A DNA stretch of 64,000 nucleotides from NCBI GenBank assembly GCA_047495785.1, contig JBLDXI010000003.1:2666001-2730000 (forward strand), in the 5' to 3' direction. The position numbers were made by a program, and so were the translations under genes. Every line of letters begins with the position of its first letter. The stretch's first letter is position 1. This stretch comes from Lepidodermella squamata (Eukaryota > Animalia > Gastrotricha). Positions 7,189 through 64,000 of the stretch are shown here, piece by piece. The notes beneath the pieces are model-generated. The model saw only the letters and a list, made by a program, of their open reading frames with translations, had not been told where the DNA came from and ran no database searches.

Positions 7189-9793
7189 TCAGGCTGTCGA
7201 TGAAACAACGCTCCAAGCATCGCCGTAGTTATCAGCCATATTCGTTGACCACTCAGCCCAGTAAGCCTCAATCTGGTCCTTCGGTCCAATTCCAGGGATA
7301 AGTCCACGATACGTCAAATCAATATCATCCGTATGGTTGTGCAACCGGTTGTAAGCGGCCTTGGAAACTTGAACTTTCATAGCTGTATAATAATTTGCAG
7401 ACGAAATCACTAAAACTATAAGATAGTGAAAAAATGTTTACGCAGGCTTGTCGAATGGACCAGTGAAGCCTCGGGAATCAAAGGGCCAACTAACAGCATC
7501 CGAGGAATTTGCAAATAAACCAGCTTGGCGGCGCATGCTCCGACGTGAATGCCAAATCGAACGTGAATGTCGCCTTCAATGTCTTCTGTTTCGTTATTGC
7601 TGATTTCGAAGATTTCCTTCAGTTCCAGGGCCAGTGAGACCATTTCAAGGACGTGGTTAGTAATAACGCGATGCTCGCCCAACCCATTTGCGAAAATCAT
7701 CCCTCCACCTTACAGATTTAGTCAAATTTTCATCGACGAATCTGAGTAACTCCAAATACCTGTAACTTCGATTTTAACGCATGATCGAGAATGAAGATTT
7801 TCCTCGATAACTTCGAACGTCTTATTGAGAATCGTCGAGAAAGTATCAGCATCGTACTCAGTTTGAAGAGCATCGATGTTGAAAATGTCCATAACGGCAA
7901 CGCAGGTATCTTCATGCAGCAAAACATATCACTTTTACATGAATCAAGGACTTGTTTTTACCTGAGAAGAACTTCGGGGACATTGATTGGCCCAGTTTAG
8001 CAGGCGTTGCTAGTTCATAGGGCAGGTAATCGTAGAGCAAAGTCAGGGCATCAGTTAGTTGATCGAGGTTCTTGTAGTAAGTTGTCACAACGTTCTGCAT
8101 GCGGCGCGTGGCAAGGATATGAAGAAAATACGTGATTACAACGAAAAATGCAGCGGTAGCATACATTCCCACGACTGTGAAAACAAGGATGTGATTTGTT
8201 GGTTGTGGTTTGGCTTACATCACTTACAGAACACGTCATTAGAAGGCCAGAGTCCGACATTTGCAGCTAGGGCTTCGTCAGATACTCGCCGCACTTCAGC
8301 TAGGACGTACAGTATGTTAGTTTCATGCCTAGCAGTTTTCTCCCCGAAGTCATTGCCGTCGATTCTGTCGAAAGCCTGCTGAAGGGCTATAGCTTGCAAT
8401 GTTTCAACTTCCTTGTTCGAGTCCAGCGAGGTCAAGTTGTCCACCTTCAGCGCAGTGAAGTCTGAAGTGATACCAGCAACTTTCTGTAGCTCTTGGTACT
8501 GGTTGTAAAACGCAAGCATTTTGCCGTAGACTCGATCATTTATAGCCACAGTTCGGTCTGAAAACAACGATTCGAAGCATCTGTAGGTTAAGCTTAAAGC
8601 AAACTCACTTTCTGAAGCAAGTTTCTTGCCGACGATTGAGTATTGCTTAAAACTCATCCACTGAAAGTAATAACGTAAATGATATAAAAGTGCGATTGGG
8701 CTTAGAGAACCATTTGAAAAACAGGCGTCAGCGCAAGAAACTCCTTGTAGCCGATGTAAGGCGGTGCATTGACAATCAAAATGCCTCCAACTGCAATGAG
8801 CTGCTCAATAATTGTCGAGTAGAACTGCAACACCTGCGCCTCTGAGGTATCAAAACATAAGCCGAGTTTACCGCGTTTCAGGTTATGTCTCTAACCTTCA
8901 GTTCCATTAACCGCCTTGCGCAACTCCCTCTGCCCCTTTACTGCCGTTCTAAGGGCGGCCAGGGAAGTTATGTTGACCTGCAGTTCTGTCGGGACCACAT
9001 CAAAATCGCTGCCTTGGGGCCACGAGTCGCTCCAGATGAGAAGCTGAATTGAGGATTGAGTTTCTTTTGCTGCAATGCTAACGCACTGTAACTTACGCCA
9101 TCGACGACTTTGAAGATTTCTCTCGACTTGAGCTGAAAGTTGTCGTAAGTGCCCGTATTGAATCTAGAAGACTTTTTAACGGCAAGCAAATAATTTTTGG
9201 GAAATTCACTCATAAGAGACGCCCATTTCATCTGCCAACGCCTGCACCATGTCGAACACTGTAGGAATGAAGATCAAAGTTCGAATTCCAATTCAAGCTC
9301 TAACGTATACTCACCAGAGTTTGCCAAAGTTCGCGTATCCTGGAAAACGGTCGAGCGGATAATATTGAGGTCCACATCATCTTACTGTAATAACTCACCG
9401 TGATTACTTCATCCATAGCATCTCTCGCGTTTGAAGCATCGATGTCAGAGTAAATTTGGACGAGAATACCAGCAGTGGCGATAATTGCGAAGGCTGAAAC
9501 CTGTAGATAGCACAGGGTTCAAAAGGAACCACACTCAATCGCATTTAACGCACCCATAACAGCATAACAGTACGGCCTGAGCTGTTTTTCAGCTGAGGAT
9601 CGAAACACGATGTGAGGCAACAACCGAAAAAGCTTTGATTGCCCAATCCCAACCGGCCGTCTTGACCCTTAAGTGTAACGCGAGTTCTACCGCTTGGCGA
9701 GGGCAGAGCCAGTGGGTCCATGTTGTCAGAGTCTGCGAAGCTCTCCGTGGGACTCGCCCGGCGACGCTGGTTAGAAGGGTTAGTACGTTGCAT
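7189..9793 (-). CDS. NIT-like 2-TM receptor with degenerate guanylate-cyclase-like domain, copy 1
   Basis: Exons encode FDPQLKNSSGRTVMLLW (pre-TM1), RTAVKGQRELRKAVNGT, TM2, LLYDYLP, VMDIFN, KIEVTGGGM, VRFGIHVG, PRMLLVGPLIPEASLVHS, MKVQVS and EAYWAEW. Confidence 0.85.
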
Positions 9794-10313
9794 GCTCTGA
9801 TTAAAACAAAAAATAAATGCCCTCCTTTGATCAGATACATGCTATATATATAGAGATGAACTCGGACGGTTAAATCACAGTCATGTGCTCGGGCCATCTT
9901 ATAATTAATTGAAGATACGTCATTTACGCACGTCATCGAAACTGATTGCCTTGGATGTACTCGACAGTAATTAAACAAGTAACAATTTTTAATCGCTGTA
10001 TTTTTCTGCAATATTATACTGCGGTCATAATCCGTTTTTAATCCGACTTCGCCTCTAAGAAGCAGCCGAAATATGTCAAATGAACCCAGTATACCTATCT
10101 GTGAAATGCACCTTACATGATTAAGCCGAATGTCGATGTTGCTTTCCCCTTTTTGCAAACATTGTTAAATCCTGTTACGGTTACTGTTAGTCATTTTCAT
10201 CTGGCAGAACTGGAAAATCGTAAAAAAATTCAATCACTAAGCTGCACGGGCACAACTGAAACGTACAAAGACGAAAATATTTATTTAAACCGTTGGGACA
10301 TAATTTTCCAAAA

Positions 10314-10565
10314 TCAGTTTTTGATTAATTGATAAATATCAACATTTCCTGATAAAGATGCTCTTGCGATCGTTCTAGCAAAGGCAGCGTCGTCGATAGT
10401 ATCGGCAGTAACGCTGTGACTAGTCAGTTTTCCGGTCGGTTTAGTAGGGACCTTGGAGATTGTCGTCGTGCTTTTTGAGTGCTTCATCGAAGATGTTCGA
10501 GTTGGAACAGCGTCATTCTTTTTGTAATGATACTCCGCAGAAACAGGCCGATTGGATTTGTCCAT
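10314..10565 (-). CDS. Possible small Ser/Thr/Lys-rich protein of unknown function (83 aa)
   Basis: ATG-initiated ORF with protein-like composition in the gap between copies 1 and 2. No recognisable domain. Confidence 0.3.
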   Translation of the reverse strand: MDKSNRPVSAEYHYKKNDAVPTRTSSMKHSKSTTTISKVPTKPTGKLTSHSVTADTIDDAAFARTIARASLSGNVDIYQLIKN

Positions 10566-11706: not shown

Positions 11707-14269
11707 TTATCCATTATTTGAAGTTGCCACACTTGATCTTTCATAGTCAAAGTTCGACTTGCCAGCCCAATCAGCCCAATAAGTTTCAATCATCTCATGG
11801 GCATTGATACCCGACATTTTCCCGCGATAGTTGAATTCAACATCATCCGTTTGGCTGTGGACACGGTTATGAACGGCCTTAGATATAAGTATTTTCATTG
11901 CTAAGAAACAAATTCCAAGTTGTGAGCAGTCTGAGTACATTCGATTGTTACTTACGCAGACAGGCCGAATGCACCAAAGCGACCTCTTGCGTTATGGCCC
12001 CAACGATAGCGAATCGAGGAACTTGAAGCTGGATGATTTTAGCTGCGCAAGGCCCAATATGAATACCAGTGCGAACGTAGATTTTGGCATCAGCATCCTC
12101 CGATTCATCGTTGGCAGTTTCAAGCAGCTCCTTTATCTCTAGAGAAGCGTGAACCATGGCTAGTGCGTGATTGATTATAAGATGTCTTTCCCCCAGGCCA
12201 GTGGCGTAAACGAAGGAGCAGCCTTAAAAACATCGGAAAGGCGTGCGAAATTGGTATCAAAAAGTTGTGAAAACCTGAAACTTCAACTTTAAAGCAAGAA
12301 TGTTTGTGAAGACAATCCTCGACCAATTCGTAAGTTTTACTGATAATCTCAGCAAACTTATCCGGATTAAGTTCAAGCTGCAGAGAATCAATGTTGTAAA
12401 CGTCCATTATACCCATGCATGTATCTGCGGATAAACAAAAAATAGGTAGCTCTAAGCAGAATGGTAATATCTTCACCTGAGAAGTATTTGATCGGCGTGT
12501 GCTGCCCCATGCGAATCACGTGAGCAAGCTCAAGAGGTATGTAATCGTAAAGTAGATTGAGCGCCTCAGTCAATTCGTCGAGGTTTTTGTAGAAACCGAT
12601 AATGGTATGCTCGAGTCTAATAGTTCCGATGATGTGCGAGACGAAGGACAACAAACCGAACAAAACCGCAATGATGAAAATAATGACAACTTAAGGAAAA
12701 TAAAGTTAAGGAACAAAGGGTAGTGAAAGGCTAGCTCATACAAAATAGGTCGTTATCTGGCCACAGCCCAACAGCTTCTTGCAGGGATTTGTCGCTGACA
12801 ATTCGAAGTTGCGTTAATACGTACTGCACATTGACATCATGCCTCAGCACTATTTCCTCGAAGGTAGCACCATCGATTATGTTGAAATCCCGGCCGTAGA
12901 CCAGAGTAATTTGTGATTCAACATCCTTATTTGAGTCAAGGGAGGTGAGGTTGTCTAGCTGAGCGACGGCAAAATCTGAAGTGAGGCCAGCGATGCTGAT
13001 GAATTCTTGATAAGCGAAGTAGTACGATAGCAGATTTGTGAAGACTGGGTCGTCAAATTGCATGGTCCGATCTATATATTTTGGCCTCAGCTTTTACTGA
13101 AATCATAGCTCAGAAATTCAAACTTACTCTCGTAGGCAAGTTTCCGCCCTACCGTCGCGAACTGCTTGAAATTAATCCACTAGTGAATAAGCATAAATCT
13201 GGCGAGGAGCAGAAGTTATTTAGCCTGGCATACCATTTGAAAAACGGGAGTCACAGCCAAAAAGTCATGGTATCCGTCGTATATTGGCGCCGCGAATATC
13301 AAGTAACCTCCGACAGTCGCGAATTGATCGATTATGGTCGAATAGAATTCGAGAACTTGCGGTTCTGCAACCGTGAAAAGCATGGGAAGTTATTCTTATG
13401 ATATTATTATGCTCACCGGAAGTTCCATTTACAGCTTTTCGAAGGTCTCGCTGTGCCTTCAATGCAGTCCTGAGAACGGCCGGGGATGTGATGTTGACTC
13501 TCAGATGGCTCGGAATAATATCCAGAATGGCTCCCGACGGCCAGGCCTCATTCCATAGTAATTTCTATTACATAAATCCGAAAACATTCTCGCATTTCTG
13601 ACAAGCAAAGGTTCCTCACTGCATCAACTTCCTTTATAGCTTCCTTGGATCTGTCCTGGTAAATGTCATATGGTCCAGAATTGTACCTGAGAGCAACATT
13701 ATTTATGCCGCGGATAATTTTCTAGAAAGAATGATTATACTGATAGGAAACAGCCAATTCGTCCGCGAGTAGTTCAACCATGTCAAAAACTGCATGATTC
13801 CACGAATTGATTTAAAACCAGTTGTTAGCTCAATTTTTACCTGCGTTTGACAGAGATCTCGTGTTCTATGAACATCAAATTATTCAGTTAAAAGTGATGG
13901 CCGTCAAAGAATTGTTACGCTAATAGTATCATCGAAGTCATTCCTTGCATTAGACAGGTCGATGTCAGAATAAATTTGGACAATTATGGCGGATGCAGCA
14001 ATTAAGGCAAGAATTACGACCTGTAATCGAAGAAATTAGACAGAAACGGTTCTACGAAATATTCGAACCCATATCAGCATGACGGCTCTGCCAGAACGAA
14101 GCTGGACCTGGGGATTGAACCAATAACCGCAGATACCTGCGAGGCCATTGTTGACTGAATTGGCGAATCTGACTGACTTGCCGTATTCTTTTGACTTAGA
14201 TCCAACTCCAAATGAATATTCAGAGCCATGATAGCTGTCTGTCCCGCTTGGTTGCTCGCGCTTGAGCAT
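11707..14269 (-). CDS. NIT-like 2-TM receptor with degenerate guanylate-cyclase-like domain, copy 2
   Basis: FNPQVQLRSGRAVMLIW, KAQRDLRKAVNGT, LLYDYIP, IMDVYN, KVEVSGCSF, VRTGIHIG, PRFAIVGAITQEVALVHS and ETYWADW. Most similar to copy 1. Confidence 0.85.
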
Positions 14270-14895: not shown

Positions 14896-17609
14896 TTAAG
14901 TGTGCATATTTTCAGATAACTGGTATGAACCAGTAGATTCAGATTGTACTTTCGATTTTTCAGAGATGAGGCTCTTTGTTTCATCGCCGTCGTCATCAGG
15001 CCTTTCCCAATCAGCCCAATAAGCTTTTATCTTGTGTCCATCTCTTATTCCATCAATTTCCCCGCGGGAAATGAACTCCACCTCGTCACTTGACTTGCGC
15101 AGGCGAGCTCGAACAGCATCAGAGACTTGAACCTTCATTGCTGAAAAATTAACACAAGATGTACAGCCATGTAAGAACTAGATATCATTCCCTTACGTAG
15201 GCAAGTCGAGTGAATGAGCGAAACTACTTGAACCGATTCGCCAACTACGGCAATGCGCGGAAACTGGAGATACGCAGCTCTCGCGTAACAGGTACCAACG
15301 TGAATTCCAAACCGCATCGATACGTCCTGCTCTATACCCTCAATAGAATCGTTTACTTCAGCCATTTTGTCCCGTAGCTCCAGCGCGATGAAAAGCATCT
15401 CAATGATATGCTGGGTCATGATATGATGCTCTCCGAATCCAGTTCCGATCATGAAGCATTCACCTTATAATACGCATAGTCATATAACTATATAGTAACA
15501 TATTCTCGAATCTACCTGTAACTTCGATTTTGAAGCAGCTATGCTTACGCAGGCAATCTTCAATAATCTCATAGGTTGTATACATGGTTTTGGCAAAGTC
15601 GCCGATGGTGGATTCGTTCATCAGAAAGGCGCAGTTCACATCAAATACCATTAAGCATGCATCTGAAATAGATAAAATCATGAGTGCCATCCTCGAGGAC
15701 AGAAATTCTCACCTGTGTGCTTGGTTACGGGTACATTCTCACTTACGCCTCTCGAGAGCAAATGCGGAAGGGATGCACGAATTTCAGCGGAATCTGGTAA
15801 ATAGTCGCGGATGAGGTCGAACGATTTCCTCAAAAGATCCAGGTTAGCGTTAAGATCGAGAAAAGTGTTATGTAGACGCTGAGTCGCGGCTACATGAACA
15901 GGAACCAGAGATAGGGCAAATATGACAGCAACGCAAATGAAAGCAAGAGCTAAAACATTTTCGTCTCGAGGCATACCGATGATTGAATATTTACCAAACT
16001 TACAAAATACGTCCACGTTTTTCCAGTGGCTTGCAGCATATTGCATAGCTTCGGCAGTTCGTCGGTTGAGTTGGCGCAGAAGCCAGTTCAAATTTTCATT
16101 TTGCTTGCTTGACGGCTCTGCTATCATTTCAGGCATAAGATTATCAAAATCTTGCTTTCCGACCTAATCAAAGAATTCGTGCTAATTTCTGATACACATA
16201 CAACATGATTACATATTGATTTTGTATTTTCTCAAGTTGTTGGTACCAATCTTGCTCCTCTGTTATGTTCCTGATCTGATCAGCTGTATATGGCGAGTCT
16301 AGCCGCGCTATCGCGATGAACTCAGAATATCGAATGTAATAATTAACGATTGAGGTGAAAACTGGGTCTCTGTAGCTGGACACCGTTCTGTCTGGTAGCG
16401 ATTGCAAGAAAAATGTGAACATGTTTCGATCAAAATGACAAATCGCCCTTACTTTCTTGCGCTAGTTTCGTCAAAACAACTGTGTATCTTTTCAAGTTGA
16501 CAATCTATGGACAGAAATGACATTAATATAGCGTAAAAATTATGGGTCTTAGCGTACGGCCTGAAAAACCCGACTTATGGCAAGCAACTCTGACCATCCA
16601 TCGAAGCGTTTTAAATTGACAGTTGCCGTACGAGCGACAAGAGCCAAGTTGTCGCCGATTTTAGCGTAAAAGTTCAAGACATCCGCCTCTGTGATTTCAA
16701 CTGAGGGTGAACAATTCGATTCTTATTATCGAAGTAAACCTGATGATCCATTCGGTGATTTTCTAGTATCTCGCTGTAACCTTAACGCCAAGCGAAGCGC
16801 TAGAGATGACGACATATTTCCACGCTCGTTCTCAGGTATGACAATCAAGTCCTCATCGGTGGGCCAGGTATCACTGAACGTCAGTTTCTTAAAAAAGAGT
16901 GCGAATAATTTGATCATTCAAGCGAAAGGAGGGGATTATACTGTATCGACAGCTCGCATTACGTCCTTGGCTTTTTCTTGAAATTCCTTTTCAAAAGCAA
17001 AAGGTTTTTTTGCGATTCACAAAGGTATTGAAGTCATACTTCATAGGGTCCGTTATTGTACCTGAAAAATTAAAATTAGCTATTTCTAGAAGACAGTATT
17101 TCACCCGACATACATGTAGAATGGTTCCGATTCCAAGGCCAGCAGCATCGAAACATCATTCCTGCATTTCGTAGGTTTGAGTCAGAACTCGAGAAATTAA
17201 AACATAATACACTTACATTTCTGCTATAAGCAAGCTGTTTTTCTGAATTAAATCAAATAATTAGGGATCAAGCGTTTTATGTGAGATCTCACCTTAATAG
17301 CTCCGCTGTAAGCCTGTCGCGCTTGTGCCAAGTCAACATCGGTGTATACTTGCACAACAATGCCAGCGATAGACAGAATCGTAAAGAATACAATCTTTAA
17401 TGTAGCAGAATTGCATTGTTGTCAAACGTAAGTTTCAAAAATTATACCAGAACCATGAACTCAATCCGTCCTCCTCGGCTTGAAACCTGCGGGGTGAAGA
17501 CGGATCTCCAGCATTGATAGTTTGCCATAGTTCCACTTAGTGACGCTGCATATTTATGAAGTACTGACGACGGCCGTTCGACGGAATTTGACGGAATAAC
17601 TGTAGCCAT
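14896..17609 (-). CDS. NIT-like 2-TM receptor with degenerate guanylate-cyclase-like domain, copy 3
   Basis: ATG at 17609 (MATVIPSNS...FTPQVSSRGGRIEF), SSSLALRLALRLQRDTRKSPNG, LIRDYLP, VFDVNC, KIEVTGECF, MRFGIHVG, PRIAVVGESVQVVSLIHS and an acidic tail. Confidence 0.85.
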
Positions 17610-18281: not shown

Positions 18282-19544
18282 TCACATCATTAATCCGATA
18301 AAAATAGAAATAACAACGCAACTGATGAGTATGATCGAGCCAAAGAACAAAAAGTCGAGCAGACGAATCTTCGTGACTTCCCAGCCGTCTACACCCATGA
18401 CCAAAACGCTTGATTTAAACGATTGTCGATGGGCTAATTCACACGAAATGCAAGTGTAAACTGTTATCACCATTCCGATAAAGATTTGAGATGAAATCAA
18501 CATCGCGGCGTAAGGAATTTGAGATGATTTTGGTATAGTTTCGTCAATTACTGATTGCAGAATAAAAAAAGCTAGCAACACGGTGATGCTGTAGCAGGGT
18601 CGATCGGGAGCTTTGGGTGGCAAAAACCAAGAAGCGAGTTGGAGGAGCATCAGGCATAAGCAGGGCAAAAACAGGTTGTTGACGTAGAAGGAAGCTTTCC
18701 GCTTAAATGAGAACGTGAAGTAGACGCGGTCGTAGTTGCCCTCCCAATTCGCATATGTCTGCTTCCTAATTGAAGAGCTAACGTTCGCCAGTGTCCAAAT
18801 CTCGCCGTCGTCTACAAAATCAATCAACGCTTGTTCCATTTCGACCCCAGCGCCATCCAATTGAAGTGCTACTATATATGACTCAACATAGCTTTCGAAA
18901 ACCATAGAGCAATCTTGCGAATCAAACGGGAATTTCGCCAGCCTATTACACGATTTTGAATATTTTTCTTTTCATGATGTAAGACTTACTTCATCTTGCA
19001 TTTCGAATTGAGCGTAGCGACGATTTGCCATAACATATTGCCGTTTTTGTAGATGTACATCGGAGTATACTGCGCCACGCTATAACAGAAACGTTCATAT
19101 TTTGCAAAGCCCTTCTCATTCTCATTTTCTCGCTTACGATGCGAAAAAATTTGCATCTGTAACAGCATTGTTATGCATCAGTTGAACTCGCCAGAACTTG
19201 GAAGCAGTATCTTGAATGCGATCGATTCTAGCGAACTCTGCCGTTTCGTTATAGCCCCATGAAATGCAGGGATGCTTCCAAGTGAAATCGATTTCAGTCA
19301 GAATAGAGAAGGTTTGCTCTTGATCTGCGATGTCTCGAAAGCCGTAAGGTACAATTTTCGACTTAACTACCAGTGGGTTCGAGTAGTTATCCACCGGTCT
19401 AGTATTGGTTTCCAGGCTGCATTTATCGTAAAGCCATTCTTTTAACATCTGTTCCTGAGCTTTGAAGGGATCATCCTCACTCCAATCAGCTGACAAGATA
19501 ACAATCAAATTACAAAGCTCGAAACAAAATATGTTGAACTTCAT
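18282..19544 (-). CDS. Cys-loop (pentameric) ligand-gated ion channel subunit, nAChR-like non-alpha, copy A
   Basis: Signal peptide, TRPV motif, spliced Cys-loop CKMKLAKFPFDSQDC, pre-M1 FKRKASFYVNNLFLPC, M2 DRPCYSITVLLAF, IPKSS, M3 and M4. Three exons. Confidence 0.9.
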
Positions 19545-20147
19545 TTTATACTAAAATAGAAAGATAATGTCGAAATGGCTCCCTGCGTATCTGGGTATAT
19601 CATAATGATTAGCTAACTACAAAAGCAAATAGCGCTTGCCTATTTGAACTGGGGAATTTTAGCAAATCGATTTGCACGTTTTGCGTCATGAGTATTCGAA
19701 ATTATCGCCTTCAAAGCGCATGATTGGCATCGATAAAAGAAATGAAATGACGTCAAAGTAGGAGTTGATGGTTTGCTTTGTTCTCCTGGATATCGCCACA
19801 TACGTCAGCAAAATTCACGGCAACTTCGCAGCAGAAAATGGAACCATAGTTCTTTGAGTTACCTTGAGAGTTGAGTGTTTACAATGAATGAAATAAAAAA
19901 TGCCCGAAAATTGCTTTCCAAAGCCGATCGTCCGATCGTCTTCCTACAACATAATGTTTACTGAGTTTGATTTACAACATTGATTTACAACGGCAGACTA
20001 CAAATTTACTTGTGGAGCGCGATTAATTAGATCCATAAATCCATGGACAATCAAATACAAACACAAAGGACTAGACTGCATAAACTATCATCTAAGCCGG
20101 TGAAATCGCTTAGTCCATCAAATTTCATTAAGAATTGGCTGTAGCTC

Positions 20148-22765
20148 TTATCTTGCCCGGAGCTCGATCAAAGAAGAAGCTACACTGATTCCATCATCAC
20201 TTTCATCTCCAAACACTTTGCTCCCAGCCCATTCGATCCAAAAAGTTTCAATGCTGTCATCGCCATTCTACGTAATAAAATTCAATATCAGGATGATTGA
20301 AAACTATATCGCACTCACGTTATTGCCCATGTCGACAAAACCACGGCGGAAAAATTTGAAATCGGTCTCGAACGATGCCAATCGTCGTTGAATGGCTGCA
20401 GTTACCAATATTCGATGCGGGAAACTCTTGGCATGAGCTATTGACGTTATTGGCAAAAGTTTTCCTATGATCATAACTCGTGGAAAATGCAGGTTCAGCA
20501 AGCAGGAATGGCACGGTCCGCAGTGCACGCCGAATCGAAGCTGAACTTCGATGTTATCTTCGCGCTCTTCATTCGTTTTGTCAGTCAGATCCCGCAGCTC
20601 CAAGCAAGCCAGGCAAATTTCCAAAACATGATCCTGAAAAATATTCAATAATGTTTGTTCATGGCCTCATGGTTTTTTTACCAGAGCGTGATGCTCCCCG
20701 ACGCCAGAGCCAATTGTTACAAAGCTACCGAAAACGTTCATCTTGAAGCAGCTGAATTTCGGCAGAGTTGTTTCGACGTTGAAGAAAAACTCCTCCAGTG
20801 TCTCTGCCAACTTAGGCGCATCCAACTGCTCTCTCAGGATCTCAAAATTTGAGACATCAAAAATCGCGGCAGCCGAGTCTTGAGTTTAAATATATTAGAG
20901 AAATCCAAGGCAAGGTGTAATTTCACCCACCATTGTGGCGCTTTACAGGCATGCATGCCCCTGTTTTAGCCATATTCACGAATTTCGCTGGCATGTAGTC
21001 ATAAAGCAAGTAGAGGCACTAGAAAACAGGTCATATCTTTTCGGAAAATTCACGATTCCACTTACTCCCGTGAGAACATCAAGACTTTCGTGTAAGTTGA
21101 CTACTTGCGCCTGGATTCTGATCGTTCCGAGCACATGGGAGACAAGAGCGATCAGCGTTATGCCTCCAGCAATGCCCATGAATATGACGGCTGAATGATC
21201 AAATCTCAGCGGGAGGAAAGAAGTGGCTTGGAAACCTTACATAACAAGTCATCCTTCGCCCAAGCGCCCGCAGCTAACGTCATTTCGATGACGATACGCT
21301 TTCGCATTTCACTAACGATCCAAGCTATGTTCTTGTCGTGGGCGTCAGCGGCAGCTGCAAAAATATCACCATCGACTTGATCGAAAAAACCCGTTAAAAC
21401 CTTGATTTCACAAACATTTCAAACAGCCAATATATCTAACTCTGATTTCTCACCGAAGTGTACAAGAGTTCTATGTTCCTGTAGGAATCTAGTCCTGTTA
21501 GATTCGTGATTTTCTCATTGCCGTAGGAAGAGTACAATGACGCGAGCGATGAGAATTGTATGTAACGTTGATAGTAGAGAAGTAGCGAGCGGAAAAGTGG
21601 GCTCCCATCGACAGTTACAGTCCGATCTAACTCAATTATGCGAATACATTAAAATATATTGCTTTGGGTGGCCAACTTTCTTTTGCCAGTCGCTTCCCCA
21701 CCAGGGCGTACTGTTTGAAGTTCATCCACTGATGTTGGGTTAAAAGAAGCTAAAACAACAGTTTCATGGATGAAAAAACTAACGCTTTGAAAGGAGGGAG
21801 TCAATCCAAAGAAATCTTGCCAGCCATCAAAGCGAGATGATTTAGCTATAACGGTTCTTGCCACCAGTGTCAAATAATCGATAATTTGTGAGTAGAATGC
21901 CATTACTGCCGCCTCTGAAAAAAGCAGTGTCATCAGCGAAAATAAATATATGGCAACCCATTCTTAATACCATCAGTCCCATTCGCAGCTCGACGAGTAT
22001 CTCGTTGGGCTTTCACGGCAGCTTTCAGCACCAGTGGTGATGTTATGTTTATCCTGTTCGCAGTAGCGATAACCGTCAAATCGTCGGCATTTGGCCATTT
22101 ATTGTTGAATATCAGTTTCTTCCCGATGTAAAAATGTGACCCATGGGCAAAATATTAACTTCTGCGAACTTACTGAATCAGTATTTTGCATTGAGATTTT
22201 TGCCTTCAAAAATGTGTTATCGCTTCAATTATAAAAAGGCTGCTTTTACCTGAGCAAGGAAGTCTTCGTATGGCCCTGTATTAAATCTAAAGGAAAATAA
22301 TATGCACAAAGGTGTGTAAGCAGGTCGAGAAACTACTCGTAGGCCGGTTCCATTTCCTCGGCAAGCACTTGAATGATGTCGAATAATTCCATAACCAAAT
22401 CCATTCGGCCCTGTGATAAACTTGATATTGAATTAAAATTGATTGGTTTATAAACACACAGAAATGTCTTTGGCCATCATTTCTCTCTCCTCGGCCATTT
22501 GAATGTCAGTTATGATCTGCACAGCTATGGACGCAGTGAAAATGGACGCCATAAATATTATCTGCGAATAATCAAAAGTTATTCTTGGCGTAATTTCGAG
22601 AGAAACGTATCATACCCATGTTAATTGCAAAGCCCTGCCGACTTTTGTTTTAGCCTGAGGGTTGAATAACAAGCTACATAACTCCTTGCTAGCTTCCATA
22701 AAGTAAGCTTTTTTCTCAACTACACTTTCTGAGTAAAGCGACATTTCCCTTGAACGAATTTGCAT
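20148..22765 (-). CDS. NIT-like 2-TM receptor with degenerate guanylate-cyclase-like domain, copy 4 (most divergent)
   Basis: FNPQAKTKVGRALQLTW, KAQRDTRRAANGT, IFDVSN, KMNVFGSFV, LRFGVHCG, PRVMIIGKLLPITSIAHA and ETFWIEW. Stop at 20148-20150. Start uncertain (22744, 22765 or 22834). Confidence 0.8.
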
Positions 22766-23073
22766 AGCAAGAATAAATTCGTGTGAATGTACTAAATTCT
22801 CAAGAAATTCTCTATTATAGCAATCTTGGAGCATTCATCCAGTCTCTTCAAAAATTAGTTTCACATAATCCTAGCAAAATTTACTGGGGCGCGCCCCTGG
22901 CTGTGCAATCAGCTTTAAGCCGGCCACGGGTTTTCGAGGATTCAATTTAACCCGCTTTCTAAACTGGACCCGGTGCAAAGGCGTGGGTGTCTTTATTCTC
23001 TCAGTCAAACAATTTAGTTCAGATGCGCATGTTTTACCAGTCTGCTTCTGCGCTGAAATTTTAGCACAGAAAT

Positions 23074-23904
<831 letters not shown>

Positions 23905-27532: not shown

Positions 27533-28285
27533 ATTTCTTTTATTCGTCTGGACACTGACCAGCCAGGGAGCTGAAATCTCTCATTAAGTAGCCACGTGCT
27601 GACAAAACTTGCATAAATATTTTGTTTTTCAGTCAATCAGTGCCGGACTTAAATGGCGGATTAACTCAGGCAATGCCTGGCCTGGTTATTTAAATGAGAA
27701 CGCGACAGCTTAACTGTCCGGGGAAACAATGTTATCTTATCTGGTTCATGCGGCATGCGATCGATTTGACTGTCGAGACACATGTTTAGAATATTGAAAA
27801 CAACAGAGATACAGTACAAAGAATTCTACTTGGGAGCTAATTGCTATAGGCAAATCGCACTGAGAAAAGTTGCTTTCGTGCTTAGCAAAACAAGTTTTCC
27901 CATGAGGGCGAAGCAAGACAGGTGCCTCTCTGCCTTTGCTTAGTCGTAAGATCAGAGTCTTACATTATTCAATTTCAGGATTACTTGTAAGATCCGCAGG
28001 GTAGTAACAAATTACAAACATTGCTTTCGTGGACGTAATGGGCAGACCTTATTCTGCATTATCAACATTGAAAAAGTAAAAGTGTTGAAAATAGGCTATG
28101 ACATTACTAGTTTATTTTGCACTTCAAATATATCTCTGCCAGCCCAATGATGTATTTACTGAAGATAGAATCAAACGAATGCAGGCCAAACTCCAAAAAG
28201 ATGCTTCTAAGGTTAGCTAACAATGGTACTTGAAATAACATTAACACATCAATTAAGTTGAGTTTTCCCGGAATTTTTCCGTTCC

Positions 28286-31100: not shown

Positions 31101-31486
31101 TCTAAAAATTTCTGCTCGATGTTTGTATGTTTTCAGACTGTTAAGGAATACATTCAAATAGCAACTAGCACGGACGTCACCTAGAATTGCTTTATTCTCG
31201 AAACTGGGATAATCCAACAGGCACGCTAAAAGGAAGGCTACTTAGCAGGATTATTAGAGTAATTAATGATTAAAGATTGGACCCATCCGAATTCTGGAGC
31301 AGCAAATAATTAAGGCAACGAGAGCTTTCACAAATAGGTCACTGATTAAACTAGAAAACGTAAATAATTCGAAATTAGGCCTAAACTATACTTTGCTTTG
31401 AGAGATATTCAATTTTTGTAAACAAACAGATGGAAAACTGGGTTAGCGTGGTTAAGTCAATTCATTGAGCTGTGGATTTTCATTTC

Positions 31487-44941: not shown

Positions 44942-45355
44942 AGGTATGCGCTTACCTTGAACTTGGAAATTCGCAAAATACTTCGAGATAAATTACTATG
45001 ACGCTCTTCAACGCATGCACCTGATTGACCACAACTAGTAAAGTTAATTACGATCGTTTGATTACAATCAAAACACGAATTAGGCGAATGAAACAATTAA
45101 TTTTACTGGGCAAAAACTGATTTAGCAAGCTTAAAAAGCTTTTTACCTTGATTAGTCACCCAACCAGACACAATAAAGCTGTTATACTTAATCAGAAAAT
45201 ATTTACGCGCCAGTGCTAATCTATATCGAAAGCAATCGAACATCTAGGTAATATTAGACCATAATACTATTATTTAGGACGATTTAATCGCATGTTTCTT
45301 TGTAAATGCTCAGAGCATTTTTAGACTTGAGTTCAGCGACAACAACAAAGTTGGA

Positions 45356-48102
45356 TTACGTGTGCATGTCTTCGGACAGTTGGAAAGATGCCGTTGATTC
45401 GGATGAGATCTTTGTCTTTGCGGAAATAAGACTTTTGATCTCGTCATCGTCATCGTCCGGAACTTCCCAGTCGGCCCAGTATGCACGAATCTTCTTACCT
45501 TCTGTGATTCCATCGACTTCGCCACGGAATGTAAATTCGACTTCTTCAATCTTTTTACGTAAACGATTGCGAACAGAATCAGAGACCTGAATTTTCATAG
45601 CTAAAAGATTCAAAATTTGGTATACAATTCGGAAGGAAAGAATATCTCTCACGTAAGCATGTTGAATGGATAATTGAAGTAATTTGCAAGGCCTCCCCGC
45701 CAACGGCCAGGCGTGGGAACTGGAGATAGGCTGCCCGAGAAAAGCAAGTTCCGACATGAATTCCAAATCGAAGAGATACGTCAAGCTCGATGCCGTCCGA
45801 TGTCTTATTCAATTCCGCCATTTTGTCACGCATTTCAAGGGCAATAAAAATCTGGGGAATAAAGTTATCCACATTTGAAAGATATGTCAACCGAGTCAGA
45901 CCATTTCTGCAATGTGTTGCTGAGTCATTCGAGGTTCTCCGAATCCAGTTCCAATCAGGAAAGACCCGCCCGTGATTTCAATCTTAACACAACTGTGCTT
46001 TCTCATGCAGTCTTCAAAGAGCTCGTAGGTTGTGTAAAGAGTTTGGGCGAACTCCTCAAGGTTCGAATCACTTATCAGGCTCCCTAAATTGTTGATGTCA
46101 ATGATCATGAGACATGCATCTGTACAAGGAAAAATTGAGAGAAAACGGTGGAATTTTTCCTTAAAAGACCTTGATGGCTTTGCATTTGGGGCACATCGAT
46201 CGATCTGGTTAGGAGAGCTTTTGCTTCATCCCCCTTCCCATTAGGGAGATAACCATAAATGAGATCAAAGGCTTTTGTTAAGGTGTCTAAGTTGCTTTGC
46301 AAATCCAGGGTTGTGTTGTAGAGGCGATACGTTCCGATGATGTGGACAGGAATCGTTAGTAGGACGACAGCAGCGGAGATACATAGTAAAGCCAAAGCTT
46401 TTAAGAAGGAGTTGGACAACATTAATAGCTAGGATTAAATCTTACAGAAAATCTCGTTGCTAGTCCATCGTCCAGCAGTAAATTCAATTGATTTTTCCAC
46501 GCGGTGTCTTAACTGTGATAACACCCAATTCAAGTCCTGATCTTGCTTTCTTGCCGGCTCTTGAACCATTTCAGGTTCCAAGTTCGCAAAATCCAATTTG
46601 GCAACCTAATATCTGAAAAAATGAAATTTCGCCAGGAAAACTGAAAGTATTACATAGGTATTCTGTAGGCGCTCCAACATTCGATAAGGATCCTGATCTT
46701 CAGTGATGTTTTGCATCTTCTCGAAGGAGAATGGCGAGTCCAGCTTTGCTGTAGCTATGAACTCAGAGTACCTAGTGTAGTACAGCACAACGCTTCGATA
46801 TACCGGATCGCTGAAATCCGTAATCGTTCGATCTAAATAGGGTTTGACTTGAAATCAAGGATTCTACGTTCAAAGAAGGGAACTCACTGTCTTCCGCTAT
46901 TTTGGACAGCACAAGGGCATATCTCTTCAAATTGATTATCTGAGGAAGAGTCGAAAGGAAAGTTGTAGAGAAGGTACTCATAAGGATTTACCGCTTGGAA
47001 AACTCGAGTTGTAGATAGGAACTCGCCCCAGCCTGGAAATCGCTTAGCATCGACAGTAGCAGTGCGGGCTATGATAGCAAGATTGTCGCCAACAGTTGAA
47101 TAGAAATTGATAACTTCGGCCTCTGTTTAACATTTCGAATTAGGTGGATTCCGAGAGGGGAATAATGTATTACCAGAAGACCCGTTAGGCGACTTTCTTT
47201 TGTCTCGTTGTAGCCTCAGAGCCGAACGAAGTGCGAGAGTCGATGAGATATTCTGACGCTGGCTTGACGGGATTACCTCCAAATCAGTTGGAGACGGCCA
47301 TATGTCGCTGAAAGTTAATTTCTGTTTAAGAAAATTGTCTTATAACGCAATTGTTATAGTCAAATTTGACAGTACCGTATCAACCGCTCGCATGACATCC
47401 TTGGCTTTTTCCTGGAACATCTGTAACCGTAAGAAAATGAAGTACATCAGATTATGATTGATTATTGATTGGCAACTTACTTCATATGGACCTGTGTTGT
47501 AGCTGGAGGAAATAAGAGCTGTTATCACAAATAAGGTTGTGAATCAAGCTGAAAGTTACGTGTAAAAAGGTTCAGCCTCCAATGCGAGAAGCATTGCTAC
47601 GTCCATCCTAACAATAGAGGTAAGACTAGTTTATCCCACCAAAATCAAAGTGATTCTTCTTACAGTTCAGATGTCAAATATTTAACATGCTGTGAAAGGA
47701 AAACATTTGAAAATCTTGAGTTGGATAGTCCGGAGTCCGGAACTTACGTGTAAAGTCTTGCTAGCTTCTTCCCTTTCTTTTGCCAGGTCAGCATCCGTAT
47801 AAATTTGTACTCCTATTCCAGCGACCGATAAGATCACAAAAAACGCAATCTGAAAATAATATCAAATTTGAGAATAGTTAGTTTTTTGGTCGAAGTAAGA
47901 ATGAAATCACCGCCGTGACTAGTGTATTTGTGCCCAGAGTTGTTGTAACTTGAGGTCGCAAGATCTTCAAACCCACGGCGCTGATTTTGCTGATGAGAGA
48001 CGGCCTCTTATACCAAATTGAGGATGGTTTCCGTGAAACTTCAGTCGCTTCTGATTTCGGCAACTCATTGTTAACAGCAATCGCAGGAGTTACTGCGGCC
48101 AT
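45356..48102 (-). CDS. NIT-like 2-TM receptor with degenerate guanylate-cyclase-like domain, copy 9
   Basis: LRPQVTTTLGTNTLVTA, FQEKAKDVMRAVDT, LIYGYLP, IIDINN, KIEITGGSF, LRFGIHVG and PRLAVGGEALQITSIIHS. Confidence 0.85.
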
Positions 48103-54584: not shown

Positions 54585-54622
54585 TTTTTGGTGAAAGTTT
54601 CAAGAAATAAAGGCGCGATGTA

Positions 54623-57217
54623 TTAATGCATCTTTTCCGAGAGTTGAAACGATTCAGTTGAAGCTGTTCCAACTGACGAAGCTTTTCCTGAAAGCAGACC
54701 GATCTGCTCGTCGTCTTCATCTGTCAAATCCCACTCTGCCCAATAAGCTCGGATAGGCCGTTCATTTGGCCCGGGTATATCGCCACGAATGACAAATTCG
54801 ATTTCATCGCTTTTCTTGCGCATGGCGTTGCGAACTGCACCGGAAACCTGAACCTTCATCGCTGCAAAAAGGGACTGTTAGATTACATAATGATTTTCAG
54901 ATTTCAGATCTTACGCATGCTGGTTGCATTTATCAGTGACGCAATTAGCAGAAGGTCTCCGGTCAGAGCGATTCGGGGAAATTGAAGGTTTACCAGCCGA
55001 GAATGGCACTGCCCAACATGGATGCCGAATCTCAGCATAGCATCCACATCGTTCGTGCTTTCTTCATTGATTCTTTTAAAGAAGTCTCGAAACTCAAGAG
55101 CAGTGTAAACCTTCGAAATAGTTGTAAATAATGATTCAGTCTAAGATATACTAACAAACCATATCAAGCACAGGGCTTCGCAAAAGATGGTGCTCTCCAA
55201 GGCCCGCGCCAATCATCATCGAGCTTCCTGTAACGTCGATTTTGAAGCAGCTGTGTTTCCTCAGAGCTTCCTCCAGGTGCTCATAAGTCTTTTGTAAAAT
55301 CACGCTCAATTCATCCGCTTGCAGGTCTGCTACCAGATTTCCAATGTTCCAAATGTCAATGGCTATGACACATACCTCTGAAGTTTGAGAAATATATTGG
55401 AAAATCAATCCATTTATCAATTCGAACTATTAACCTGGGCAGTGGATGACTGGTAACCGATCTTCCACTCCAGACATCAGCTTCGGTATGTCGTTGGCCA
55501 TTTCTCTCGTGTCGGGGATGTAATCGTAAATCAGGCTAAATGCTTCTTCAAGCAATTCGAGATTATCCTGCAGAGCGTTGATCGTAGTTCCGAGTCGAAT
55601 CGTGCATATTATGTGCAGAGGGAAAGCAATGAAAGTGATCGCTATCGAAATCGCAAGCATAACAACAGCTGATTGAAAGACATTTTAATAGAGGATTCAG
55701 ATTGAAATTTCCGAAAATTACAGAAGATTTCTAGCTGCGACCATGCACCAGAAAACTTGGTGACTTCAGCTCTGATTTGTTTCCGCATTTGATTCGTGAT
55801 CCAAACCAAGCTAGCATCCAGTGGTATGGCGACATCATCAACCATTTCGCGCGATAGTGAAGCGAAATTCTGAACCTCAACCTTGAAAAATGGGAGAACT
55901 TCGAAATATAATCATTCATATGGGCATTACATAGTTTTTCTGGATCTTGATAGCATTTCCATGGTTGTCCTGATTTTCGGTGACATTGTTTACTTGAATT
56001 GCGGCGTAAGGCGATGAGAAAACGCTTATCTTCAACCATTCTTCGTACTTGATGAAATAGTTGTGCAGATTTTTATACACCGGGTCACTGTAATTAGCGA
56101 CGGTCCTGTCTGAAAAAAGTTCAAGATAAAATAACTCAGATTGAGAAGCCAGCTCGTACTTTCTTCGGCCAATTTTCCGACGATGAAGCTCCAAGTCTTG
56201 AGATTCAATCTCTGTAAGAAAAAAACTCAAGTGATAATATAACTGTTAGCATTTTGGAGCAAACTGAGTTCATGATGCGTGTCATTGAGAATAGATCACC
56301 CCAACCAGGAAAACTATCCGTTTGAATCATGATACGACCAGGCAATGACTGCATGTTATTTATGATGCCATCGTAGAAAGCAATCACTGCGCTTTCTGTG
56401 ATAGAAAATATTTTAGGGCTCTTAAAACTCGCGTGATGTTTTCAATACCTGTAGTCCCATTCGGAGCTTTCCGCGTGTCTCGCTGAGCTCTCAATGCGGC
56501 TCTTAGGTTGGATGGCGAAGAAACATTAGGCCTATTACCTTCACTCAATCCAATCAAGTTAATAGGCCTTGGCCAGACATCGCTGTAAATCAGTTTCTAC
56601 TTCAAAATAATGAATTATTCGGTCGTTAAAACATGTTTGCATACTCACCGTATCTACAGCTTTAATCGCGTCTCTAGATTTTTCTTGAAAGACCTATAGA
56701 GTATTTGATTTTTTGTATGATATTTTGCTACGGAAAGCTAAACATTATACTTCGTATGATCCAGTATTGTAGCGATAGAATATATCTAATTCTCCAGAGA
56801 GCAGAGATAGAACATCAGCCCTGTATTGAGTTTAAAATCAACGCCTTGCACCAGGAAAACGTTAGTCAACTCACAGCTCTATGATGACATGGAAAGCGAA
56901 CTGCGGGGAAAATTTGAATAAAAACCCGGGGGAGAAGAATCAAGCCGACTTACATTAACTTGGGATGTTAGATTCGACCGGATGGTTGTGAAGTCTGCCT
57001 CGGTGTAAACTTGTACTGTAATGCCGGCCAAGCATAATATCGCCAGAAACGAAATCTGAAGGATAGAGAATTCAAACAAATTGTGAAAAATTGCCTGCTC
57101 TGTTACGGAGAAAAAGAACACTGCTCGGCCCGAAGTCGATGTCAAATCTAAAAATGTAGTTGCGATTGGTTGGTGATGGTCGCTTGGTGTGATCTTCGAT
57201 TTCGAAAGAAAATGCAT
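54623..57217 (-). CDS. NIT-like 2-TM receptor with degenerate guanylate-cyclase-like domain, copy 10
   Basis: TSTSGRAVFFF, LAILCLAGITVQVYTEAD (TM1), RAQRDTRKAPNGT, LIYDYIP, AIDIWN, KIDVTGSSM, LRFGIHVG and PRIALTGDLLLIASLINA. Confidence 0.85.
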
Positions 57218-58440: not shown

Positions 58441-60744
58441 ATGTTGCTAATAATGCGACTTTCAGGTTTTCTCTGTTTGAATTTGATCTTACTCAAAGCT
58501 TCAGCGATTACAATCCTACTACCATTTATGCTTCCTTTAACTGGAGACGATCCACGAAATGGCGAGGCATGTCACGCTGGCGCCCAAGTCGCTGTGTCGT
58601 TGTTCAATCGAAATCCGAACTTGACCACTGCATTCACAATAGAGCCCGTATTTCTCAACGAAGGCGTCGGTGCCTCTCTCGCTCCAAAGCAGCTCGTTGA
58701 ATTTTCACGGCAAGTTTTGACATCTGAAGATCGAATCCTCGCACCAATCGCAGCTGGTCCGTTTTTCGCGAATGGATGCAAAGCAGCTGCTTCACTCGCT
58801 CACCATTTGAACATGGTCTTGCTGGGTATCGGTTGTGGCCCGCCTGGCATGACAGCAAGACGTCAACTTTATCCGAATTTTTACCGCCTGAGATCAGCCG
58901 GAGACGTCTCGATATTCACAATCGTTCAATTCATAACGAAAGTAGGAAACTGGCAAAAACTGGCGATATTAACTTGGGCTGGAAATTTCTACAACTTTGA
59001 GTTATCGCTCGTGCTACAAAAAGAGTCGAAAAAAGCTAACGTATCCGTGCCGTACTACGACGTTGTTGCTGATGTTGATGAACAAGCTGTTCAGCACCTG
59101 AAAGACAGCGATTATCGAATAATTGCATTCGTAGTGGCAGAAAATGCGCTCATCAATAGATTCCTTTGTTTAACCTACAAACTTGGAATGACAGGGTACA
59201 GATATGTCTTCATTCTAACATACAACGGTTATGCCGACCCAGAAAGCCTTCCAGAAACCATGGCAGATAACTGCACGAGAGATATGATAAAAACCCAATA
59301 CTTGTACACGAAATGGGTTGGAGCTCAATTAGAAGTTGATGACGCTTCATTGGTGTCTTCACTCGGGATTAACTTGACGTCATTTGATTCCATGTATCTT
59401 CAAATAACTAACTGGAGAAAGCCGGCGGATCATATCAAGAGAAGTGTATGTTATGATGCAGCTATGAATGCTATGCTGATCTTGAACGAAGCTGACTATC
59501 AACTAGGTCTCATGAACATGAGCTTGAAAGACTACGCCTTGAAACCTGACGTGATAGCCGACGTGGTTAATACTACAACAGCCAAATCCAATTACGTGAC
59601 GCTAAGGGCCGGGCGAATGAGTTATTCTAAGCGGCTGGAACTCGACCATGATCCTCAGGTGATCGTTCAATGGAGCCCGGAATTAGGGACTGTAATCGAA
59701 TACAAAAGCCTACTCTCCGAAAGCGGAAACCCAAATCGTTATGAAGATTACAATTTTTCTGTAATGCGGACTCAAACATGGAGAACTCCACATGGCAAAC
59801 CGCCGAAGGAGATTAGGAGTATTAGAATAATAAGGAAAGATGTGCCGCCAGAAGCTTTCCAATCAGCAGTTGCTCTCACTGTTACATTAAGCTTGATGCA
59901 GATTCTCGGTGCGATCAGAATTTTCTACGCTCGGACCTTGAAAAAGATAGATTGGTCGCTGTTACTCAGCTGTTTGATGCTTAATACTAGCAGTGTTTTG
60001 TTCTCTGCTTCAAAGCCTAATGATACTCTCCGTCTATGCATCGTCCGAATGGTCACGCCAATTATCGGCTTTGCTTCTCTAAATTTCTTTATTTGGGCAA
60101 ATATTATCGTGATCTTGTTCCCACGTACGAAACGGCGAAGAATACCAGCAAATCACAAGTCATTGCATGCCATTGCGAGTTTGATATCTCGATCACAGCA
60201 TACGACTTCAATCATCTGGGCAGCTTATTTCAAGAGGAATGCATTGATGCAGAGGCGCTATTTCAAAGCGCTTTGTTCTGCTCTTGGGACTGAGGCGGTT
60301 TTAACAATATTTTGGCTAGTTTTCGCAACGCCAAGTTATTTAGAAACAAACGAAATCCAACCCTACGACCCTGTAAGAGATGAAGTCGTGATCAATCGAG
60401 TAATCAAGTGCTTTACTGGTTCCGATATTACTTGGATACTTTTCTTCGTCATAGTTAATATGCTGGCATTATGTTCCGTTGTGTGCGTGATTTTTTTGAT
60501 AGGACGTGAATCCAAACGTGATCCTGACTACGCACCTGTTAAATTGCTTACTGTCAACACAGCGTCTCTATATATCGCCTCTATTTTCGTAATTATGGTT
60601 CTTCCCTCGTTTTCGTCACAACTTGCTGCTCTTTCGTTCAGTTCACTATTAATTTCAGCGGTTGCGTCGATAGTTGTCGGCTACTTTCGACTTCGCAAGA
60701 TTCGACCAGTAAGACCACAATCGAAAGGACTCAGGAAACCCTAA
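58441..60744 (+). CDS. Class C GPCR, GABA-B-receptor-like (Venus flytrap domain plus 7TM), intronless, divergent
   Basis: Signal peptide. VFT motifs GEACHAGAQVAV, GPFF, LYPNFYRL, NWQKLAIL, LKDSDYRII, GMTGYRYVFIL and YDAA. Seven hydrophobic segments, with no Cys-rich domain between VFT and TM1. Confidence 0.85.
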   Translation: MLLIMRLSGFLCLNLILLKASAITILLPFMLPLTGDDPRNGEACHAGAQVAVSLFNRNPNLTTAFTIEPVFLNEGVGASLAPKQLVEFSRQVLTSEDRILAPIAAGPFFANGCKAAASLAHHLNMVLLGIGCGPPGMTARRQLYPNFYRLRSAGDVSIFTIVQFITKVGNWQKLAILTWAGNFYNFELSLVLQKESKKANVSVPYYDVVADVDEQAVQHLKDSDYRIIAFVVAENALINRFLCLTYKLGMTGYRYVFILTYNGYADPESLPETMADNCTRDMIKTQYLYTKWVGAQLEVDDASLVSSLGINLTSFDSMYLQITNWRKPADHIKRSVCYDAAMNAMLILNEADYQLGLMNMSLKDYALKPDVIADVVNTTTAKSNYVTLRAGRMSYSKRLELDHDPQVIVQWSPELGTVIEYKSLLSESGNPNRYEDYNFSVMRTQTWRTPHGKPPKEIRSIRIIRKDVPPEAFQSAVALTVTLSLMQILGAIRIFYARTLKKIDWSLLLSCLMLNTSSVLFSASKPNDTLRLCIVRMVTPIIGFASLNFFIWANIIVILFPRTKRRRIPANHKSLHAIASLISRSQHTTSIIWAAYFKRNALMQRRYFKALCSALGTEAVLTIFWLVFATPSYLETNEIQPYDPVRDEVVINRVIKCFTGSDITWILFFVIVNMLALCSVVCVIFLIGRESKRDPDYAPVKLLTVNTASLYIASIFVIMVLPSFSSQLAALSFSSLLISAVASIVVGYFRLRKIRPVRPQSKGLRKP

Positions 60745-63015: not shown

Positions 63016-63179
63016 CGCAAATAATTGAACATTTTACTTGATATACTTGACATTATTGCACTCTAATAAGTACATGAATATTACGTTAGTTGATACAATT
63101 TTTCAAACTAACAGCATTCGTGGATGAGAAATGATAGTAAGATAACTTGATAATCGCGCTCTCCGTCTTTAGATTGCTC

Positions 63180-64000
63180 TCAATGCATGTCTTCCGATAA
63201 CTGGAAAGATCCAGTTGAATCCGATGTGACCTTTGATTTCTCCGAGATGAGACTCTTAATTTCGTCATCATCGTCATCCGGTATCTCCCAATCAGCCCAG
63301 TAGGCGCGAATAGGTTTGTCCTCGGTGATTCCGTCGACTTCGCCCCGCGACGTGAACTCGATTTCTTCAACCTTCTTGCGTAAAAGATTTCGCACAGTGT
63401 CAGAAACCTGAATTTTCATTGCTGAAATGGTACAAATGTTAATACTGTTTTTAATTATTTTAGCAAGCTAATTACGTAAGCATGTCGAGTGGATTATTGA
63501 GACGACTTGAACCGCCGAACCAATTGCGACGAATCTCGGGAATTGCAGGTAGGCCGCTCGGGCATGGCATGTACCGACGTGAATGCCGAATCGCATGGAC
63601 ACATCCTCCTCGACTCCCTCAAGGCTGTCGTTCAATTCCTTTATTTTATCCCTTAATTCCAGAGCAATGAAAACCTGATGACAAGAAATTGATAGGGATA
63701 TCCATAGGGAGTTATAACTTACCATCTCGGCAATGTGTTGATTCATAATATGATGCTCGCCGAAACCAGTCCCAATCATGATGCAGCTCCCTGAGCAAAA
63801 CGGCAGTGAAACGATGAATACGGAGACTATGAAATTACCTGTAACTTCAATTTTGAGACAGCTATGTTTTCGAAGGCAGTCTTCAATCATTTCATAAGCC
63901 GTGTACATTGTTCGGGCGAAATCTTCCAAACTCAGGTCGTTCATCAAGCTACCAACATTGCTTACATCAAATATCATCAAACAAGCATCTTAAATGAAAA
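63180..64000 (-). CDS. NIT-like 2-TM receptor with degenerate guanylate-cyclase-like domain, copy 11 (only the cyclase exons are in the window)
   Basis: IFDVSN, KIEVTGSCI, MRFGIHVG, PRFVAIGSAVQVVSIIHS and an acidic tail. Closest to copy 8. Confidence 0.85.

Follow-up and report, generated by a model that had tools for sequence, protein, structure and literature searches.

Receptor guanylyl cyclases (GCs) are assumed to signal through the cyclic GMP (cGMP) that they produce. In class III cyclases, two subunits share a catalytic site: one supplies two aspartates and one arginine, and the other supplies the base pair, an asparagine, an arginine and a lysine (PMC6005667). Canonical non-metal subunits, such as the beta subunit of soluble guanylyl cyclase (sGC beta) and the C2 domain of adenylyl cyclase (AC C2), lack the first Asp; sGC alpha and AC C1 carry both metal Asp plus the phosphate Arg but neither the ribose Asn nor the other phosphate Arg, and need a complementary subunit (PMC6005667, Table 1). 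In Caenorhabditis elegans, DAF-11 and ODR-1 form an obligate heterodimeric receptor GC in which each monomer supplies part of one catalytic site (PMC5225109). The NIT-domain guanylyl cyclases (NIT-GCs) have the published layout of a transmembrane segment (TM), an ectodomain, a second TM, a short linker and a cyclase domain (Moroz et al. 2020, PMC7400543), and in Platynereis, NIT-GC1 produces cGMP and its cyclase domain is conserved (bioRxiv 10.1101/2023.08.02.551600). Here we analyze 11 cyclase-homology genes, c1 to c11, in a 64,000-nt stretch of Lepidodermella squamata contig JBLDXI010000003.1 (the window), where they are spread over 7189-64000, all on the minus strand.

This 11-gene sub-family has given up the catalytic Asn/Arg pair, and most members also a metal ligand, yet selection guards the domain more closely than the sensor domain. 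The cyclase-homology domain probably acts either alongside a partner subunit or without any synthesis of cGMP. We put somewhat better than even chances on its being the intracellular dimerizing and transducing module of receptor dimers, in which c5 to c7 may complement a partner and the eight others are non-catalytic.

Catalytic-site residues

Eight catalytic positions are listed for class III cyclases (PMC6005667, Table 1), and we scored them in a residue alignment of the 11 window copies, four metagenome relatives described below and six canonical receptor cyclases. Exact string search recovered all ten distinct motif strings of the original prediction (c8 and c11 share one), on the minus strand and where they had been placed, with starts at 7505, 12019, 15260, 20483, 25155, 28761, 37575, 42580, 45716, 54978 and 63539. 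Searching the window with pieces of c7 (tblastn) gave 11 collinear cyclase paralogs and no twelfth.

Both residues of the transition-state pair are missing from all 15 family sequences. The ribose Asn is replaced by P,Q,Q,P,Q,Q,Q,Q,Q,L,Q in c1-c11 and by E, K, P or Q in the relatives; the phosphate Arg at position 7 is replaced by L,L,L,I,L,L,L,I,I,L,I and, in the relatives, by L or A. The helix due to carry this Arg has no basic residue in 9 of 11 copies. Two residues further on, the canonical Glu is His in 14 of the 15 sequences (10 of the 11 window copies; c10 has Asn). The spliced 11-way alignment therefore shows the same substitutions at all three positions that had been read from the unspliced DNA. 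When c6 is aligned by HMMER to GC-C (8fx4) and GC-A (9bcv), the alignment is gap-free from RIGVHSGP through PRYCLFGDTVNTASRMES, with N>Q, R>L and E>H.

The first metal Asp (Asp 1) and the phosphate Arg of RxGxH are present in 15 of 15 sequences. The second metal Asp (position 3) occurs only in c5, c6, c7 and the four relatives; the series for c1-c11, G,C,E,S,D,D,D,G,G,S,S, is identical to the earlier account, as is the presence of the first Asp in all 11. The half-site pattern (both metal Asp and the phosphate Arg, without Asn and Arg) is thus found in c5, c6, c7 and all four relatives and not in the other eight copies. The base-specifying pair, taken as Glu/Cys for GTP and Lys/Asp for ATP, does not hold across the 11 copies: at base position 2, six copies have E, four have D and one has N, and base position 5 is Cys only in c6 and c7 and L, A, M, Y or V elsewhere. 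At the terminal phosphate Lys (KGKG loop) the alignment is ambiguous; the aligned column is variable, and c6 and c7 have a Lys two residues along.

No copy can supply the set of base pair, Asn and Arg, so homodimers would be unable to build a canonical catalytic site. Since eight copies lack the second Asp too, rescue in a heterodimer would be possible for at most three (c5 to c7).

Three further features of the domain were observed. An invariant G-x-G-E replaces the canonical S-G-L-P after the second-metal strand in all copies and in the relatives L001, L002, L004 and L005, and the same 15 sequences have an invariant Asn where canonical cyclases carry Arg or Lys. The second-metal codon differs in both closest pairs (c3/c5, GAA/GAT; c8/c11, GGC/AGC) within a nearly fixed flank, KIEVTG-x-C..IGTGFGE; the site may be unusually fast-evolving.

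Selection and age of the copies

Selection tests used only cleanly aligned blocks: the ectodomain's second half, the stretch from the second TM through the linker (TM2-linker) and the cyclase domain. In the cyclase block, the pair c3-c5 has a nonsynonymous divergence (dN) of 0.089, a synonymous divergence (dS) of 0.98 and a ratio (omega) of 0.09 (bootstrap 0.05-0.15). The pair c8-c11 has dN 0.058, dS 1.4-2.5 and omega 0.02-0.05 (bootstrap 0.011-0.057). Close paralogs differ mostly at synonymous sites, as had been proposed: synonymous-only against amino acid-changing codon differences number 55 and 28 in c3-c5, and 78 and 21 in c8-c11. By codon position, the differences are distributed 20/9/71 and 18/3/87, respectively.

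A maximum likelihood (ML) codon model of all 11 copies gives omega of 0.12-0.16 for the cyclase block, 0.17 for TM2-linker and 0.15 for the second ectodomain block. Fixing omega at 1 lowers the log-likelihood (lnL) from -5328.2 to -5666.3, a cost of 338 units, and is rejected. With omega between about 0.02 and 0.16 overall, the dN/dS analysis upholds the purifying selection first suggested from inspection. The cyclase block has the lowest dN in the pairs c3-c5 and c8-c9, and in c6-c7 the linker block has a slightly lower value. Constraint is strongest in c8 and c11, both of which lack the second Asp, Asn and Arg. In close pairs, homologous introns are 55-67% alike versus 80-82% for exons.

In most pairs synonymous sites are near or past saturation, which defeats YN00 and many NG86 estimates and marks the duplications as old. 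Strong purifying selection acts on these intact, anciently duplicated genes, and no part of the protein is better conserved than the cyclase domain, including in copies without either half-site. Because it is strongly constrained even in the doubly defective copies, the domain has a working role.

Gene models and architecture

Gene models were built with a small dynamic-programming splice finder and then corrected against the paralog alignment. The genes, all on the minus strand, are as follows.

c1 gene, 7189-10565, minus strand: cyclase exons 7909-7760, 7708-7442 and 7382-7189; 5' end tentative; first Asp kept, second metal position Gly, Asn to Pro, Arg to Leu, His present.
c2 gene, 11707-14269, minus strand: cyclase exons 12424-12275, 12222-11956 and 11900-11707; second metal position Cys, Asn to Gln, Arg to Leu.
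c3 gene, 14896-17609, minus strand: cyclase exons 15662-15516, 15463-15197 and 15140-14896; second metal position Glu; in-frame 54-nt intron at the TM2 exon.
c4 gene, 20148-22834, minus strand: cyclase exons within 21018-20148; second metal position Ser, Asn to Pro, Arg to Ile.
c5 gene, 24793-27783, minus strand: cyclase exons 25578-25410, 25358-25092 and 25037-24793; both metal Asp; in-frame 51-nt intron just before the second Asp.
c6 gene, 28286-31100, minus strand: TM2, linker and cyclase in the single exon 29327-28603, last exon 28549-28286; both metal Asp, base Cys; poly-Ser tail.
c7 gene, 37066-40019, minus strand: cyclase exon 38141-37417, in-frame 51-nt intron, last exon 37365-37066; both metal Asp.
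c8 gene, 42221-45243, minus strand: cyclase exons within 43023-42221; second metal position Gly; C-terminus SFQLSEKMH.
c9 gene, 45356-48102, minus strand: cyclase exons within 46119-45356; second metal position Gly.
c10 gene, 54623-57217, minus strand: cyclase exons within 55377-54623; second metal position Ser, Asn to Leu, Asn in place of the family His.
c11 gene, 3' part (cut by the window end), 63180-64000, minus strand: cyclase exons 63986-63839, 63790-63723, 63674-63476 and 63421-63180; second metal position Ser.

Introns are GT-AG and about 50 nt long (mostly 46-64 nt), at positions common to the paralogs and the metagenome relatives. Ten of the 11 copies are open to a stop codon without an internal stop; c11 is truncated at the window end with its cyclase domain complete. 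All 11 copies are free of stops and frameshifts in the carefully modeled part, which starts roughly midway through the ectodomain and ends at the stop codon, and conserved exons extend upstream. Apparent breaks in early models of c1 and c7 were model errors; the conserved frame is open at both places.

The predicted protein has a cytoplasmic N-terminus, a first TM (TM1), a helical ectodomain of about 300 residues bounded by the two hydrophobic segments, TM2, a helical linker of about 70 residues to the cyclase core, the cyclase-homology domain and an acidic tail. A kinase-homology domain is absent. Pfam PF00211 matches all four open reading frames (ORFs) scanned (c5, c6, c7 and c11) with E-values of 8e-8 to 6e-20 and 32.5-72.1 bits (gathering cut-off 21.9), and the remaining copies align along the whole cyclase domain. 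An AlphaFold2 model of the c6 domain has a mean pLDDT of 90.2 and a pTM of 0.86, and its best Foldseek matches are the GC-A cyclase domain, the sGC alpha-1 chain and AC C1 (TM-score 0.80-0.84). As modeled, the c6 domain is confidently folded as a class III cyclase.

The C-termini of c3, c5, c8, c9, c10 and c11 are conserved, with an acidic DDDDDE followed by S-x-S-T-x-S-F/Y-Q-L-S-E-x-M-H(T) before the stop (e.g. 14896-14940 and 42221-42260). The tail of c6 and c7 differs, being long, poly-Ser and basic. Several copies have stop-free introns of 48-54 nt, a multiple of three: c3 (~16003-15950), c5 (25409-25359), c7 (37416-37366), c8 (~43573-43526) and c11 (63838-63791 and 63722-63675), all on the minus strand. 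Given their length and lack of stop codons, retention of such an intron would preserve the reading frame. In c5 and c11, one of them immediately precedes the second-metal position.

Relatives and phylogeny

An exhaustive HMMER search with c6 of 1.84 billion representatives gave no match below 1e-30, and 130 of the best 150 matches carry the canonical Asn...Arg motif. Only five fragments of the window family were among the matches (P0001, P0002, P0003, P0008 and P0046), on contigs from three ENA metagenome assemblies where the adjoining genes are animal-type with short introns. Four of the five, from another small-intron animal, could be modeled. They share with the window copies the layout, an intron after H-x-x-x-L, the loss of Asn and Arg, and the His, and all four retain the second Asp. 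On contig L002 (2231-3673), the relative also carries, ahead of TM1, a Cys-rich N-terminal exon of 480 aa in which CHC..C.C motifs recur; none of the window copies has it. A search of the ESM Atlas returned generic cyclase clusters only; a homologous-protein search with the c7 ORF returned nothing, under a length filter that excluded full-length kin.

In an ML tree, the 15 sequences form a 100/100 clade on a long branch apart from the canonical cyclases, with the relatives not outside the window copies. Since the relatives also share the Asn/Arg loss, the loss predates the split of the two animals. The ancestral state of the family resembles the metal-half pattern of sGC alpha and AC C1.

The nearest full-length relatives are NIT-GCs, yet the family stands on its own branch in the tree. 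When we scanned with Pfam ten matches of about 530-630 aa, picked from the top matches of the c6 TM2-linker-cyclase stretch, all ten carried PF08376 (NIT) and PF00211; their identity to c6 is about 22-25%. Pfam NIT was not found on the ectodomain exon pieces. Comparing the approximate ectodomain models with true NIT domains by hhalign gave a weak match (probability 32%, E-value 5e-4, 105 collinear columns; reversed control E-value 0.44). The family thus appears to be a very divergent branch nearest the animal NIT-GCs, with membership not proven and a weak link between the ectodomain and NIT.

Expression

Two run searches found no sequencing run recorded as RNA that contains these genes. Run X2, which is RNA-like and RNA only by guess, yields spliced contigs of the neighboring cys-loop channel gene at 40245-41516, with joints at 40901/40954 and 41044/41095 that skip 52 and 50 nt and have CT..AC ends (GT..AG on the minus strand). 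X2 contigs also form thin unspliced patches on c7 (37512-37818 and 38822-39030) and c8 (42222-42335 and 42653-42793). These patches are compatible with low expression of c7 and c8 and are not proof of it.

Interpretation

Intact genes, a catalytic pair missing in 11 of 11 copies and purifying selection together make the original prediction, a pseudo-cyclase when homodimeric, a sound reading of the sequence. The mechanism we favor starts from copies that retain no more than the metal half-site, with the first Asp and phosphate Arg in all, and the second Asp in c5 to c7. The Asn and Arg due from the opposite subunit are missing from every copy and the base positions are mostly altered (Glu left in six, Cys in c6 and c7). 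A subunit supplying Asn, Arg and the base residues could then form one site with c5, c6 or c7, as in sGC alpha/beta, AC C1/C2 and DAF-11/ODR-1. The eight doubly defective copies (c1-c4 and c8-c11) would be non-catalytic sensor or regulatory partners that act without canonical catalysis. The earlier suggestion of heterodimer subunits accordingly survives for c5, c6 and c7, with both metal Asp, and fails for the other eight, for which no partner could complete a canonical site. Canonical non-metal subunits lose the first Asp, yet it is invariant here, which hints that a metal or phosphate contact is still used.

Some points weigh against this mechanism. No complementary partner subunit is present in the window, and the regulatory-partner role of the eight unrescuable copies is a guess. 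With most pairs saturated, omega rests mainly on two close pairs and the ML model. The 5' parts of the gene models are approximate, and X2 cover on c7 and c8 is low, without any spliced joint on the cyclase genes.

The copies might instead be pure pseudoenzymes, none of them ever taking part in cyclic-nucleotide synthesis, that signal by dimer rearrangement, by nucleotide or metal binding without turnover, or through the C-terminal tail. We regard this as possible but doubtful. It would account for the 8 of 11 copies without either half-site, among which the pair c8-c11 has the lowest omega, and for pocket positions that vary among paralogs around a fixed core; the family-specific invariant GxGE motif and His, and the conserved tail S-F/Y-QLSE-x-MH in six copies, also speak for it. 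The universal first metal Asp and phosphate Arg, however, with the second Asp in c5 to c7 and four relatives, fit continued use of the metal/phosphate site. Equally tentative is the broader idea of a large, ancient animal family of non-catalytic cyclase-homology receptors, a counterpart of the pseudokinase receptors, that transmit an extracellular signal without a cyclic nucleotide. The signal might pass through a ligand-driven rearrangement of the dimer, with the conserved C-terminal tail as readout, or through binding of a nucleotide or metal where the Asp/Arg half-site is retained. A shared new chemistry around the His, raised in the original prediction, finds no support: the base positions, ribose position and second metal position vary freely among paralogs, and the His lies outside the eight tabulated class III catalytic positions (PMC6005667).

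It is improbable that the copies are active homodimeric cyclases in which, for example, Gln, His or the GxGE Glu substitutes for Asn/Arg, even though the fold, first Asp, phosphate Arg and RxGxHxG core are all kept and Gln, chemically close to Asn, occupies the ribose position in 8 of 11 copies. The Arg is Leu or Ile in every copy, mostly in a helix devoid of basic residues; seven copies have Gly, Ser or Cys for the second metal Asp; and at the ribose position three copies carry Pro or Leu, while three of the four relatives carry Glu, Lys or Pro, so that no common substitute residue is seen. Least likely by far are decaying pseudogenes or relics whose conservation is only apparent, from recent duplication or gene conversion. 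The tandem arrangement makes gene conversion possible, but we reject this explanation: the carefully modeled parts of all 11 copies are free of stops and frameshifts, with conserved exons upstream; dS near or beyond saturation makes the copies old; and differences cluster at third codon positions, with omega far from 1.

Should the copies pair with complete subunits, they would illustrate how a single catalytic partner can serve many sensor subunits. Should they signal by themselves, the cyclase fold would have a non-catalytic output in animals.

Neighboring genes

Two paralogous cys-loop ligand-gated ion channel genes (Neur_chan_LBD, Neur_chan_memb) lie on the minus strand, at 18286-19550 between c3 and c4 and at 40245-41516 between c7 and c8. 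Two paralogous calcyphosin-like EF-hand genes, also on the minus strand (~22885-23904 and 31283-32268), are directly upstream of c4 and c6. The repeated EF-hand and channel genes suggest that the array grew by duplication of multi-gene blocks. On the plus strand, a 767-aa ORF between c10 and c11 (58441-60744) matches the ANF_receptor ligand-binding region (PF01094, E-value 6.5e-18); neither this ORF nor those that follow showed a cyclase or channel domain. A single-exon cofilin/ADF gene, also on the plus strand, occupies 33664-34149 (PF00241, E-value 3.9e-12).

Comparison with known systems

Like NIT-GCs, the window copies have a TM-ectodomain-TM-short linker-cyclase layout without a kinase-homology domain. 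Unlike NIT-GC1, all of them lack Asn and Arg and eight lack the second Asp. They resemble DAF-11/ODR-1 as receptor-type cyclases in a lineage-specific expansion of receptor cyclases, although doubly defective members under selection are not described for the nematode receptor GCs (PMC5225109). The nematode proteins also differ in having an ANF-type ectodomain and a kinase-homology domain. The metal-half pattern of c5 to c7 and the four relatives is that of sGC alpha and AC C1, both of which also rank high in the c6 fold search; those proteins, however, are soluble or twelve-pass with a known partner, whereas the window proteins are two-pass receptors, eight of them without the second Asp. Degenerate GGDEF domains of bacteria are a nucleotide cyclase fold without catalysis, retained as a binding or regulatory module. 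As members of another cyclase family, they offer an analogy only.

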